A stretch of DNA of 64,000 nucleotides, taken from contig JANHCV010000013.1 of the NCBI GenBank assembly GCA_025594325.1, positions 372,001-436,000 of the forward strand, given 5' to 3'. Source of the stretch: Blastocladiella emersonii ATCC 22665 (Eukaryota; Fungi; Blastocladiomycota). The notes under the pieces were generated by a model. That model was not told the DNA's origin, did not search any database, and worked only from the letters and a program-made list of their open reading frames with translations. Within the stretch, counting starts at the first letter, position 1; every line of letters starts with the position of its first letter. Shown here in pieces: positions 3,565 through 63,914 of this stretch. The position numbers were made by a program, and so were the translations under genes.

Positions 3565-4534
3565 GAGGCGAGTCGGAGACGCGCTGGCCGCGGGACCGAG
3601 CCGAGCGAGCGTACCCGCGACACGCGGACTCGAGCCGTGTGGCGGCTGCAGACGGGCGGCTCGAACCAGACCACCACCGCTCTCTACAGTCGGGCGCGGT
3701 GAGACCGAGGCTCGCGGAACTGACGCGCAGCCAGCAACGTACAGTGTGGCGCGCGGCCAGGTCGATGATCGGGTACTCGTGAGTCAAAGGGCTTGAGACC
3801 ACGGACTCGGACGCGCGCGCGGCCAGCTACACGAGCGCCGCTCCGTCGTTAGTCCCATTGGTTCATGCGCGCGCGGCTGTCGACGCGGCGGGTGCGTCTC
3901 CTCGCGCTGCGCCGTGCCCTGTCGCCGCAAGGCAGAGTCCAGGCGGGGCCAGCTCACAACAGCGCGTCGCGCGCACGTGAGACATGCGCACGCACGGCGG
4001 CGACATGATGGCGGCAAGACAGCACCCACGGCGCGATGACGGCAGGACAGCTCGCGCGGTACAGCGCGGTGGCGAGCGTGGCCGGCGGCAGCGTGCCGGG
4101 CTCTCGCCGTAACGTTCGTTGCGACTGGAGCCAAGCGCGGCGACGGCGAGCGCGGCGCAGCGAGGAGGCAGCGAGGCGCGCGGGGCGTACCCAGTGGCGG
4201 TGGACGACGAGGCTGCAGCGCGGCGATGATTAGCGTGATTCGTGGTGGGGCGGATGCATTGACAGAGCGTGGGCGGGGAGCAGCCGCCGCGCGGCGGCAA
4301 GTCCTGAGACCGCCGGCCGACGCGCGCCGAGTCACCAGCCCAGCCACGTCACGTGCCAATGACCCCCACGTGTTTTCTCGACGCGTCTCACAGCTCGTCT
4401 CACGGTCCGCCAAGCTGCAACTCCCCGACGGCGAGGTTGAGCTCGATAGAGCGTGACAAAGGAATCGATATTTACAACAGCGGCGCGGGGAACGAGGAGA
4501 ACGAAATCACGGCAAGGTCAGCCCCGCGGCCTGG
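3565..4534. repeat. Copy 1 of an inverted duplication (partner 60423-61386)
   Basis: 3713-4534 is the near-identical reverse complement of 60423-61244 (822 bp; two substitutions noticed; identical 209-aa and 145-aa ORF-track translations). 3565-3712 is a more diverged extension. Confidence 0.95.
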
Positions 4535-60422: not shown

Positions 60423-61386
60423 CCAGGCCGCGGGGCTGACTTTGCCGTGATTTCGTTCTCCTCGTTCCCCGCGCCGCTGTTGTAAATATCGATTCCTTTG
60501 TCACGCTCTATCGAGCTCAACCTCGCCGTCGGGGAGTTGCAGCTTGGCGGACCGTGAGACGAGCTGTGAGACGCGTCGAGAAAACACGTGGGGGTCATTG
60601 GCACGTGACGTGGCTGGGCTGGTGACTCGGCGCGCGTCGGCCGGCGGTCTCAGGACTTGCCGCCGCGCGGCGGCTGCTCCCCGCCCACGCTCTGTCAATG
60701 CATCCGCCCCACCACGAATCACGCTAATCATCGCCGCGCTGCAGCCTCGTCGTCCACCGCCACTGGGTACGCCCCGCGCGCCTCGCTGCCTCCTCGCTGC
60801 GCCGCGCTCGCCGTCGCCGCGCTTGGCTCCAGTCGCAACGAACGTTACGGCGAGAGCCCGGCACGCTGCCGCCGGCCACGCTCGCCACCGCGCTGTACCG
60901 CGCGAGCTGTCCTGCCGTCATCGCGCCGTGGGTGCTGTCTTGCCGCCATCATGTCGCCGCCGTGCGTGCGCATGTCTCACGTGCGCGCGACGCGCTGTTG
61001 TGAGCTGGCCCCGCCTGGACTCTGCCTTGCGGCGACAGGGCACGGCGCAGCGCGAGGAGACGCACCCGCCGCGTCGACAGCCGCGCGCGCATGAACCAAT
61101 GGGACTAACGACGGAGCGGCGCTCGTGTAGCTGGCCGCGCGCGCGTCCGAGTCCGTGGTCTCAAGCCCTTTGACTCACGAGTACCCGATCATCGACCTGG
61201 CCGCGCGCCACACTGTACGCTGCTGGCTGCGCGTCAGTTCCGCGCGCCTCGGTGTCACAGCGCGCATCTGTACAGTTGGTGAGCTCGCTCAAGCTTCTCG
61301 GTCGCGGCCGCCACGCGGCTCAAGTCCATGTCGCGGGTACGCTCGCTCGACTTGGTCCTGAGGCGAACGCGGCTCTGACTCGCCCT
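60423..61386. repeat. Copy 2 of the inverted duplication (partner 3565-4534)
   Basis: 60423-61244 is the near-identical reverse complement of 3713-4534; diverged extension to about 61386. Confidence 0.95.
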
Positions 61387-61545: not shown

Positions 61546-62028
61546 TTAGACGAAAACAAGCGAGGCGCCGTTCCACTTGAACTTCGACTGGCTGGTTCCT
61601 GTTACCATGCGAAGAGCGTTATTGTTGACGCAAGCAGAAATGGTCACCGTGCCTCGGGCAGGAGCAAACTTGGACATCGACTTGGGGCCAACGTCAACGT
61701 GGGTGTTGCGGTTGTTCCAATCCAACACCACGAACGTGACATTCTCGTCGCTGTCGTTGATCAAAGTAAGGTAGTGGATTGGGATGAGGTTGCTGAGTTT
61801 TTCGCCGGCCGCACGCGAATAGTGGATTGACGAATACGAGGTGCAGGAAGGAAACTTGAATTTCATCTTGAGGCCGTTTCCGGGGGCCGCGTTGACCTTG
61901 ACCGTGTCGCCTGGGTGGATGGTGTAGGCCGAGTAGCACGTGGAGTAGATGGTGTCAGCAGCGTTGTAGGACAAGACGGTCACCGTTTCGGGGTGGTCGT
62001 TGTAAACTTTACAGCTGGCGTTGCCCAT
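61546..62028 (-). CDS. 160-aa orphan protein, beta-rich, two internal pseudo-repeats, possible N-myristoylation (MG-)
   Basis: Intronless ORF starting MGNASC. Repeats VYNDHPETVTVLSYN and LINDSDENVTFVVLD. TATA-like element upstream. Confidence 0.7.
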   Translation of the reverse strand: MGNASCKVYNDHPETVTVLSYNAADTIYSTCYSAYTIHPGDTVKVNAAPGNGLKMKFKFPSCTSYSSIHYSRAAGEKLSNLIPIHYLTLINDSDENVTFVVLDWNNRNTHVDVGPKSMSKFAPARGTVTISACVNNNALRMVTGTSQSKFKWNGASLVFV

Positions 62029-62103
62029 GTTGTTGATATCGTGGAAGTCTAGGTTGGTGGCTTACTATTAGGGACCGCGCTTGGAGGGGGGAGGCCACCC
62101 TGA

Positions 62104-62111
62104 TTTTTATA
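62104..62111 (-). promoter_or_regulatory. Putative TATA box for the 160-aa ORF
   Basis: Minus-strand TATAAAAA 76 bp upstream of ATG 62028. Confidence 0.3.
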
Positions 62112-62171
62112 GGCCGAGGGCACAGGTACGTTGGTGCTTCGTTATAGCACTGCACGGTGGCCGCACAAGAT

Positions 62172-62368
62172 CTGCTCTCACCACCGCGCGGTGGACACAG
62201 CTGCTCTCACCACCGCGCGGTGGCCACAGCTGCTCTTACCACCGCGCAGTGGCCGCACAGCAGCTGCCCTTATTACCGCGCGGCGGCCGCACAACGTCTG
62301 CTCTCACCACCGCGCGGTCGCTGCACAACGTCTGCTCTCACCACCGCGCGGTGGCCGCACAGCGTCTG
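62172..62368. repeat. About six tandem 29-33-bp units, each centred on the palindrome CCACCGCGCGGTGG
   Basis: Unit approximately CTGCTCTCACCACCGCGCGGTGGCCGCACA. Perfect palindromes at 62181-62194, 62210-62223 and 62341-62354, with variants between. Confidence 0.9.
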
Positions 62369-62591
62369 CCTACAACAAGTACTTGAACGGCCGCTGCTCG
62401 TCCGCGCTCCTCCGCTCAACATCTCCTCTGCTATTCCACGATCGTTGCAGGCTTCAAGCTCAGCAAAACAAGTTTACATTCCCTTTGGCGTTACTGGCAT
62501 CACTTTCTCGAGTCGTTCCATTGGACGCAACCTTCAAGCCAAGCAAGCTTTACGGTTGTGTGTTTGCTTTGGTGTGTACATTTTCGCCGTC

Positions 62592-63914
62592 ATGAACAAG
62601 GGCGCCGATTCTGCGGTCCCCAACGCGGGCCTTCAACAGGCTTCTGGAGGTGCAGCTGGCCTTCTTGGGCGCCGTTCTCAAGCTGCTTTTCTTTATCGCG
62701 TCATGTCCGTTGACGAGCTTCTTGCACAGCCCGTTCGTGTCGCGGCTGGTCAAGCTCTGTCCCAGGTCTGGTTTTCCGAGTCGCTTAAACACACGCAAAA
62801 GTTTCTTCCCAAACGACTTAGCCAGGTCGCTGCTGGAACCTGGAACCCTGTGAGTGCTGTCCGTTTCACAGTTCCACGCAAGGTGTACCAAGCGATCCGT
62901 GAGCAGGCAATGTCGCAGCGCAACATCTCTCAGTTTCTCGGGCATCAAAATTCTCAGTTCAATTTCGAGCAACTGCTTCAGCTTCCCAAGGACAGCCCGC
63001 TGACCAAACCTGGTGCCCTTCTTGGAAAGGGGCCCAAGGCAAATTTGTACCTTGGCGTTGAGGATGGCAAAAAGCTTACGCAGGCCATTAAGCTCGTTGA
63101 AGTTGCAGGTCCGCTGCCTCTTGGGTCTCCAGTCGATTCCATTAAAAGCAGCTCGTTTCATCACAGGGCCGTTATCAACCCAAACGGTACTGTCGACTTC
63201 AAGCCAGTGAAAAGCCTTCGAAAATTCTTTGCCGATCACCCCAAGTCTCTTAAATGTGTTGGCGCGACCATCGACCTTGTTCTATTTGGTGTGGCGCTTG
63301 GTACAAGCATTGCAACGGGTGACCCACGTCCTGCTGTTGAAACTGCGGTGACTATTGCTGGAGCGGCCGGAGCTGCCACAATCGCTTCCGCTTATGCTCC
63401 CATTGTTGGCGCTGCAGCTGTTGCGGGACCCTTAGCCGCTGCAGTGGGGGTGGCTATGGTGATTTCGCTGGTGTTTGACCTCCTCTGGCCCTGCACGAAC
63501 CCTGTTTATCATGTGCCAGTTGCACCAGGGCCGGGCCCCCCTAACATCATGCGGCAGGCCATTTCTATGAGCAGCTTGCCTGGTATGCAGCAGGCGATCC
63601 GCTTGATCCCGCAAGGGCCTCCTCAGGTCATGACAAGTGTTTTCCCTCTCCGCGGCCAGCCTGTCTTGTTCGAACAAGCTGCTCGGGAGCCCTTGGAATG
63701 TGCAATGGTTCGGGTCGAGTCCTCACAGCTTGAGAAAGGCGAGGTGGTCATTGGAGTCTTTGGAGAGAGCGACGATCCAAACGCCGAAGTGGTTGTTGTC
63801 TCCACTGACGTGGAAACGGCGGAAACTGGATTCATGCTGACTGAAACGGTCGCTGGCACGAAAGACGGCAAGGTCGTGGTCAGGCTCTCAAACCTGATCA
63901 ATGTTGACAAGTAG
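62592..63914 (+). CDS. 440-aa toxin-like protein: ART-like N-terminal domain, hydrophobic Gly/Ala-rich segment, beta-rich C-terminal domain
   Basis: Intronless, lower GC. LYRVMSVDEL...VWFSES...AVRFTVP...FNFE...ANLYLG gives an R-S-E-like layout. Long hydrophobic stretch VGATIDLVLFGVALG...VAMVISLVFDLLW. ATG 62592 is in frame with the 585-aa ORF call, whose extra N-terminus is translated tandem repeat. Confidence 0.55.
   Translation: MNKGADSAVPNAGLQQASGGAAGLLGRRSQAAFLYRVMSVDELLAQPVRVAAGQALSQVWFSESLKHTQKFLPKRLSQVAAGTWNPVSAVRFTVPRKVYQAIREQAMSQRNISQFLGHQNSQFNFEQLLQLPKDSPLTKPGALLGKGPKANLYLGVEDGKKLTQAIKLVEVAGPLPLGSPVDSIKSSSFHHRAVINPNGTVDFKPVKSLRKFFADHPKSLKCVGATIDLVLFGVALGTSIATGDPRPAVETAVTIAGAAGAATIASAYAPIVGAAAVAGPLAAAVGVAMVISLVFDLLWPCTNPVYHVPVAPGPGPPNIMRQAISMSSLPGMQQAIRLIPQGPPQVMTSVFPLRGQPVLFEQAAREPLECAMVRVESSQLEKGEVVIGVFGESDDPNAEVVVVSTDVETAETGFMLTETVAGTKDGKVVVRLSNLINVDK

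Follow-up and report, generated by a model that had tools for sequence, protein, structure and literature searches.

A 64,000-nucleotide stretch of the genome of Blastocladiella emersonii ATCC 22665 (the window; G000:C5:372001-436000) carries two intronless genes, here called A and B, which lie head-to-head and form a genuine co-inherited, fast-evolving, divergent two-gene module. So far the module is known from just two related G+C-rich eukaryotes. Protein A is predicted to have a toxin-like layout, in which a globular N-terminal domain (N-domain) is followed by a hydrophobic hairpin and a β-rich C-terminal domain (C-domain). Our tentative reading of the whole, to which we give somewhat less than an even chance, is that A and B make up a co-regulated module at the membrane, with A inserted and B binding and restraining it.

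The host assembly comprises 32.65 Mb in 21 contigs, is eukaryotic and has a G+C content of 63%. Gene A occupies positions 62592..63914 of the plus strand, stop codon included, and encodes 440 amino acids in an uninterrupted, intronless open reading frame (ORF) that runs from the first in-frame ATG. Its frame is open upstream as far as 62157, through a tandem repeat, with no ATG before 62592. Gene B (61546..62028, minus strand) is an intronless ORF of 160 codons starting MGNASCK. The two genes are divergent, are separated by 563 bp and are each present once in their own genome. They sit in an island of reduced G+C at about 61300-64300, with 55.2% G+C in A and 54.4% in B as against 63.3% for the whole window. 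The G+C content of third codon positions (GC3) is 0.54 for A and 0.76 for B, compared with 0.81-0.90 for adjacent host genes. G+C at the first codon position (GC1) exceeds that at the second (GC2), a coding-like pattern.

The evidence that the pair is a unit comes from a second organism. An exhaustive phmmer search through 1.84 billion representative proteins found a single relative of A, the 427-aa protein P0001 (E 8.6e-12), which aligns with residues 21-422 of A at 29-30% identity. P0001 is encoded on L006, a 15-kb Logan contig from run SRR15309496 whose remaining genes (LSM, Dpy-30 and a split Y_phosphatase2) are of eukaryotic kind. Directly upstream of P0001, divergent from it and across an intergenic region of 369 bp, lies the gene for P0002 (162 aa), a homologue of B with 34% identity (E 2e-25). 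The neighbouring genes of L006 are found on other contigs of the host genome or are unmatched there, and in a tblastx comparison of L006 with the 28 kb around the pair, A and B were the sole shared genes. The two organisms share a Y_phosphatase2 orthologue at 55-79% identity; the two hosts are therefore related yet clearly distinct, and A and B, at 30-34% identity, evolve much faster than housekeeping genes. Since adjacency has been kept with no conserved surroundings, the products of A and B are very likely interdependent. Word-index protein searches gave zero matches for A or B alone, and a profile built from A and P0001 added none.

These results bear out the part of the original prediction that described the locus itself. 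The two ORFs, the motifs quoted for A, its Gly/Ala-rich hydrophobic segment and the reduced G+C were all confirmed at the coordinates given above and below. The proposed pairing of A with B was upheld by the co-occurrence of both ORFs elsewhere: P0001 and P0002 are adjacent on L006, and the head-to-head order is retained at 30-34% identity and with no flanking synteny. Beyond P0002, at L006:1608-2159 (minus strand), lies a gene whose 183-aa product is rich in Cys and begins like a signal peptide; the gene is unmatched in the host genome and falls outside the conserved module.

Comparison with P0001 divides protein A into regions of very different conservation. A variable tail (residues 1-30; 32% identity over 19 aligned positions) precedes the best-conserved soluble block, FLYRxMxVDE ... 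WxSESLxxH (62682..62801, plus strand; residues 31-70), which is 45% identical to P0001. This block contains the motifs FLYRVMSVDE (33-42) and WFSES (60-64), and within them or close by R36, E42, S62, S64 and H67, all invariant in P0001; these are candidate residues of an NAD pocket, with a putative catalytic role. The block opens a basic N-terminal globular domain (62682..63236, plus strand; residues 31-215) with a net charge of about +14 (+10 in P0001). The remainder of this domain, residues 71-215, includes the motifs VRFTVP (90-95), FNFE (123-126) and NLYLG (151-155). It is only 17-26% identical to P0001, and here VY, R and NxE are invariant, the last being N124-x-E126 at nucleotides 62961-62969.

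The N-domain is followed by a Gly/Ala-rich hydrophobic helical segment (63237..63497, plus strand; residues 216-302) in which identity to P0001 rises to 41%, with a peak at residues 239-255. Kyte-Doolittle maxima fall at about 228-234 and 273-296, and P0001 likewise has two strong peaks. The two hydrophobic spans flank an invariant D-x-RPAVETA-xx-IA sequence, and FxLLW is also invariant. Glycine-zipper-like motifs of the form small-xxx-small-xxx-small number 12 in the hydrophobic segment of A and 8 in that of P0001. An AlphaFold2 (AF2) model of A places helices at 217-242, 246-258, 263-275 and 279-302, and reaches a pLDDT of 50-60 only here. Together these features suggest that A probably inserts into a membrane via a central hairpin. 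According to the positive-inside rule of membrane topology, the basic N-domain should therefore be cytosolic. No signal peptide was seen at the N-terminus of A, P0001 or B on inspection of the sequences. The repeated small-xxx-small motifs liken A to glycine-zipper membrane proteins, and its hydrophobic hairpin recalls those of pore-forming toxins (the pore domain of colicins and pyocin S5) and holins; all matches to these were non-significant, and A matched no Gly-zipper family in Pfam. The hydrophobic segment drew weak hits to the pore domain of pyocin S5 (E 0.92), to a holin PHROG (E 1.4) and to tape-measure proteins, all of them likely compositional.

Beyond the membrane segment lies a conserved proline hinge VPxxxGPGPP (63498..63545, plus strand; residues 303-318) with 50% identity and an invariant G313-P-G-P-P317. 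It leads through a linker (residues 319-365; 22.5% identity) to an acidic, putatively β-rich C-terminal domain (63687..63911, plus strand; residues 366-440; 22.5% identity), whose strands come from the low-confidence AF2 model. Residues 361-440 carry a net charge of -9, and the matching part of P0001 one of -12. PDB and Pfam searches with the C-domain gave zero matches, and on comparison it proved unrelated to B. In the order of its parts (enzyme-like N-terminus, helical hairpin in the middle, β-rich C-terminus) A would be analogous to diphtheria toxin and the actinobacterial diphtheria toxin-like proteins, a likeness of architecture. Unlike diphtheria toxin, A has no match to the Diphtheria_C or Diphtheria_T profiles and no signal peptide, and its motif set is R/SxS/E rather than H-Y-E. 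Two further observations concern the DNA of gene A. A 229-codon ORF runs antisense to it (62550-63239, minus strand); it has no independent support and most likely arises incidentally from G+C-rich coding sequence. At positions 62515 and 62771, contig ends from run X4 read loxP-like (ATAACTTCGTATAGCATAC and its partner), a junction artefact of a mate-pair/Cre-lox library and not genomic.

Protein B was modelled with AF2 from the two-sequence alignment as an all-β protein (pLDDT 80.5, pTM 0.62) consisting of two tandem Ig/prealbumin-like β-sandwiches at about residues 1-80 and 82-160. On this model B has a predicted β-sandwich fold. Its top Foldseek match, extending over both halves, was a Vps13 adaptor-binding domain with a PxP peptide (E 5.8e-5, TM 0.35), and the atlas fold search returned a SpaA/SdrD-like cluster (TM 0.59); these matches are generic, with sequence identities of 8-14%, and function is not transferable from them. 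The same fold class includes the extracellular domain of PepT1/2, the Vps13 VAB repeats, the B domains of SpaA and SdrD, and TssJ. Most of these β-sandwich matches are extracellular, whereas B is predicted to be cytosolic and lipid-anchored. In a four-way alignment, both halves of B and of P0002 carry the pattern h-x-h-x-N-[DK]-x4-V-x-h-V ... G-x-V, which suggests an internal duplication, the halves of B not being significantly similar by BLASTP. For P0002, Pfam gave a sub-threshold match to PLipase_C_C (E 0.0019; 19.6 bits against a cut-off of 24.4).

The N-terminus of B is informative as to its location. The consensus for N-myristoylation is G-{EDRKHPFYW}-x-x-[STAGCN]-{P} after the initiator Met. 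The starts of B (MGNASCK) and P0002 (MGAANAK) are aligned, share the form MG-x-x-x-[CA]-K and both fit this pattern. B would thus be N-myristoylated and held on the cytosolic membrane face, where Cys6 could add a palmitate.

The divergent intergenic region (62029..62591, 563 bp) is presumed to act as a bidirectional promoter. Tandem Repeats Finder identified within it an array at 62148..62369 in which a 34-bp unit recurs 6.8 times, every copy being centred on the palindrome CCACCGCGCGGTGG with the core CCG-N2-CGG. Allowing at most one mismatch, 5 palindrome sites were observed against 0.06 expected, and the exact 14-mer occurs 5 times in the 32.6-Mb genome, three of these occurrences being in the array. 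The sites are candidate transcription-factor sites through which A and B may be co-regulated. Fungal zinc-cluster (Zn2Cys6) factors use upstream activating sequences (UAS) with CGG-type sites, as in the UAS of GAL1-GAL10. The region between A and B resembles a GAL1-GAL10-type divergent fungal promoter in holding 5-6 spaced CCG/CGG palindromes; it differs from the GAL1-GAL10 UAS in its CCG-N2-CGG spacing, and the corresponding intergenic region of L006 lacks the array. A scan of the locus for bacterial-type promoters and terminators returned nothing informative, as expected for a eukaryote.

The identity of the N-domain was a central element of the original prediction, which saw in A an R-S-E ADP-ribosyltransferase (ART) of the kind carried by bacterial Rhs toxins. 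Enzymes of this clade have an Arg on strand 1, an S-x-[ST] motif and a late catalytic Glu, set in a split β-sheet with the strand order 4-5-2/1-3-6. In part the prediction was supported. The arginine, the S-x-S motif and the late glutamate all proved invariant: Y35-R36, S62-E-S64 and N124-x-E126 are identical between A and P0001 (two sequences), with N-x-E in A where the ART norm is [QE]-x-E, and ART toxins appear among the sub-threshold feature neighbours of the domain. The other part found no support: no search produced a match to an ART family, and sequence searches against bacterial toxin domains and ARTs detected no ART, no Rhs and no other family. The closest parallel is TreTu, the C-terminal ART toxin of Salmonella Rhs-main (PF24691, PDB 7ZHL/7ZHM). 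TreTu belongs to the compact ARTs of about 100 residues and holds NAD+ through R6 in strand 1, E12 in helix 1, S25 in the loop after it and H31 in strand 2 (PMC9825190). R6 and E12 of TreTu and R36 and E42 of A have the same spacing of six, and S25 and H31 have possible counterparts in S62/S64 and H67 of A. The conserved core of aromatic-R36, E42, S62-E-S64, H67 and N124-x-E126 is compatible with a compact, NAD+-using R-S-E pocket. Unlike TreTu, A is eukaryotic, has no Pfam match even at E 10, and lacks an Rhs cage or PAAR; its ART-like domain, of putative fold, is N-terminal with the membrane hairpin after it, and its partner is divergent and a predicted β-sandwich rather than Tri-Tu-like. 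Weighing these points, we regard an ART-type fold for the N-domain as a possibility on the doubtful side of even.

A second intronless toxin-like gene, of 504 codons' worth of protein (504 aa), was noticed elsewhere on the same contig (C5:908187-909701; L012:688-2202, minus strand). The N-terminal two-thirds of its product are Gly/Ala-rich, repetitive and hydrophobic, and are followed by a domain with VVYRGD, YVSTSH and EFEVSIL (R-STS-ExE) that has a sub-threshold Pfam match to Scabin-like (E 0.0064; 16.8 bits against a cut-off of 27). A Gly/Ala-rich hydrophobic segment joined to an ART-like domain therefore recurs in the host genome, with the order of domains reversed. As a relative of A, this gene was ruled out by BLASTP and by hhalign (probability 0.2%).

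We propose the following working model for the membrane module. Protein A, having no signal peptide, would insert through its conserved glycine-zipper-like hairpin, leaving the basic N-domain, and probably the acidic C-domain too, on the cytosolic side. There the N-domain would present an enzyme-like pocket, possibly of ART type and NAD+-using. Myristoylation would bring B to the same membrane face, where it would most likely bind A and so regulate or neutralise it, and the palindrome array would co-regulate the two genes. Binding of A by B, ART chemistry, a logic of the toxin/antidote kind and toxicity itself are all conjectural elements of this model. Its most ambitious form is a new eukaryotic poison-antidote module, arisen or domesticated in early-diverging fungi and acting in conflict between self and non-self such as allorecognition, meiotic drive or antagonism, with A a diphtheria-toxin-like three-part toxin (ART-type domain, glycine-zipper hairpin, β domain) and B its myristoylated antidote; this we consider improbable.

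Several observations weigh against this reading of the module at the membrane. Conservation is defined by two sequences, that is by one comparison, and adjacency by two genomes. A search of sequencing runs for the locus returned four DNA runs of one sample and no RNA run. Neither A nor B was assigned to a family in sequence and profile searches of Pfam, NCBIfam, PADLOC, PHROGs and PDB, and family scans of P0001, P0002 and the separate domains likewise yielded no significant match. Pfam at E values up to 10 placed neither A nor its N-domain in a family and gave P0001 just a non-significant match to DUF6232 (E 3.2); PDB searches, whether made with the whole proteins, with alignments of the N-domain and the C-domain or with a 46-aa motif block, yielded chance-level matches only; and PF24691 and PF15633 were not detected at the locus. 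In favour of the ART step, an ordered aromatic-R..SxS..E pattern arises among the invariant columns in 0.015% of column shuffles, but the pattern was chosen post hoc and the test takes no account of the way in which conserved residues cluster naturally. By chance, an alternative H..Y..E triad turns up in 23%; motif-spotting is therefore weak. Also in favour of that step, the named clusters nearest by language-model features to residues 25-215 were TreTu_C (the top named neighbour), Tox-ART-HYD1 and Diphtheria_C/T, all at 0.78, with 7 of the 10 best family-bearing neighbours in the family or clan of the best one, and whole A lay near Diphtheria C/T (0.86; 119/256 shared features) and glycine-zipper clusters (0.80), but these atlas scores of 0.78-0.86 fall in a range often reached by shuffled proteins and serve as leads only. 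The single-sequence AF2 model of full-length A has a pLDDT of 37, is unusable and gives the N-domain no fold evidence, and the predicted topology of A is ambiguous between two and three spans. Finally, prediction of an A+B complex gave an ipSAE of 0.00; controls were not run, and the value speaks neither for nor against binding.

The same evidence may be accommodated by a lineage-specific membrane complex that is not toxic, in which A is a hairpin or multi-span scaffold, or an enzyme without ART chemistry, and B is a lipid-anchored β-sandwich adaptor, for instance one binding the VPxxxGPGPP hinge much as the VAB β-sandwich repeats of Vps13 take up PxP peptides. The complete lack of ART signal in the profile searches fits such a complex, as does the distribution of conservation, which is strongest in the membrane segment and proline hinge and not in the N-domain alone. 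The top structural match of B to an adaptor-binding domain holding a PxP peptide points in the same direction, and so does the lack of a signal peptide in either protein. We consider this account rather unlikely, though not far behind the module with an inserted and restrained A.

The surroundings of the pair raise the question of mobility. A dispersed repeat of 0.96 kb occurs in the window as two inverted copies, at 60423-61384 (plus strand) and 3567-4534 (minus strand), which share 96% identity across a distance of about 56 kb; on other contigs the repeat has at least 8 copies with 70-95% identity. The short contigs of high depth that the sequencing runs show at 61000-61312 are consistent with a repeat. 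The unique 2.9-kb island that holds A and B has its left edge exactly at the right end of the repeat, 61384. On the other side, an uninterrupted ORF for a Trm8-like tRNA (guanine-N7) methyltransferase with the motif FADIGCGYGGLL was noted at 66740-67783 in window numbering (L003:8740-9783, minus strand); its GC3 of 0.90 is typical of the host, and ordinary host genes therefore follow the pair on the right.

The abutment of the island on the repeat would suit a pair that is cargo of a selfish or viral element, either a poison-antidote cassette (meiotic drive or allorecognition) or the remnant of an endogenous virus, moved between related eukaryotes. Consistent with this, A and B travel jointly without flanking synteny, and both are intronless, of lower G+C and weak in codon bias. 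However, the pair is single-copy, no terminal inverted or direct repeats were found flanking the island, and no transposase or integrase lies inside it; the ordinary host genes on the right also argue against cargo, and no relative of the pair was found in 2.9 million viral contigs, nor any significant match in PHROGs. It is possible that A and B passed together from one related eukaryote to another. As an explanation of the locus, cargo of a selfish or viral element has in our view a slim chance.

Slimmer still is the origin put forward in the original prediction, namely that A reached the genome horizontally as a bacterial polymorphic ART toxin of the Rhs type, equipped with a translocation segment, and that B is its immunity protein. 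The order of motifs (R, S-x-S, late E), the presence of the Rhs-borne TreTu family among the feature neighbours, the GC3 of A (0.54 against 0.81-0.90 for the host) and the position of the locus beside a dispersed repeat in a transposon-rich region all agree with it. Against it, pattern and tblastn scans based on the two alignments turned up no relative in 185,579 prokaryotic genomes, JGI metagenomes and IMG/VR. Across these contig scans and the 1.84 billion proteins, no bacterial, archaeal, metagenomic or viral relative was found; the sole relative is eukaryotic, with the eukaryotic neighbours LSM, Dpy-30 and Y_phosphatase2. Pfam and NCBIfam revealed no Rhs/YD repeats, PAAR or other delivery module in A. 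Where an Rhs immunity gene would follow its toxin directly in the same orientation, the partner gene in both organisms lies upstream and is divergent, and the modelled fold of B is unlike that of the immunity protein Tri-Tu, a β-sheet plus two helices (PMC9825190). The composition of the relatives bears on the point as well. The P0001 gene has a GC3 of 0.70, near the 0.77-0.83 of its own neighbours, and that of P0002, at 0.77, is native-like. Since the P0001 gene is also mildly low in its own genome, the low GC3 of A may stem from weak codon bias, as in a gene expressed poorly or only under some conditions, and not from recent transfer. With the sole relative eukaryotic, a foreign bacterial origin is without evidence; transfer from bacteria is thus not supported, and we hold it to be very improbable.

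That A and B are non-functional chance or decaying frames in G+C-rich DNA has next to no likelihood: long spurious ORFs are indeed plentiful in the window and RNA support is absent from the runs found, but GC1 > GC2, the confident fold model of B, and frames that are intact in two organisms with starts, lengths and arrangement kept all oppose it, and the protein-level homologues of both ORFs, in the same arrangement in another organism, effectively refute it.

What is new here is an orphan pair of protein families, at most a variant of the effector-plus-partner kind. The locus illustrates that low G+C together with toxin-like motifs is insufficient to call a bacterial transfer. If the ART reading is true, the N-domain of A would represent an ART family invisible to all current profile libraries, present in a eukaryote and fused to a membrane-insertion segment. 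The enzyme would furthermore be genetically locked to a lipid-anchored partner, and the pair would offer a compact, testable model of how toxin-like enzymes are built and restrained. Without the ART reading, A and B still show cleanly how an orphan module of two fast-evolving genes can keep its linkage while the surrounding synteny is lost.

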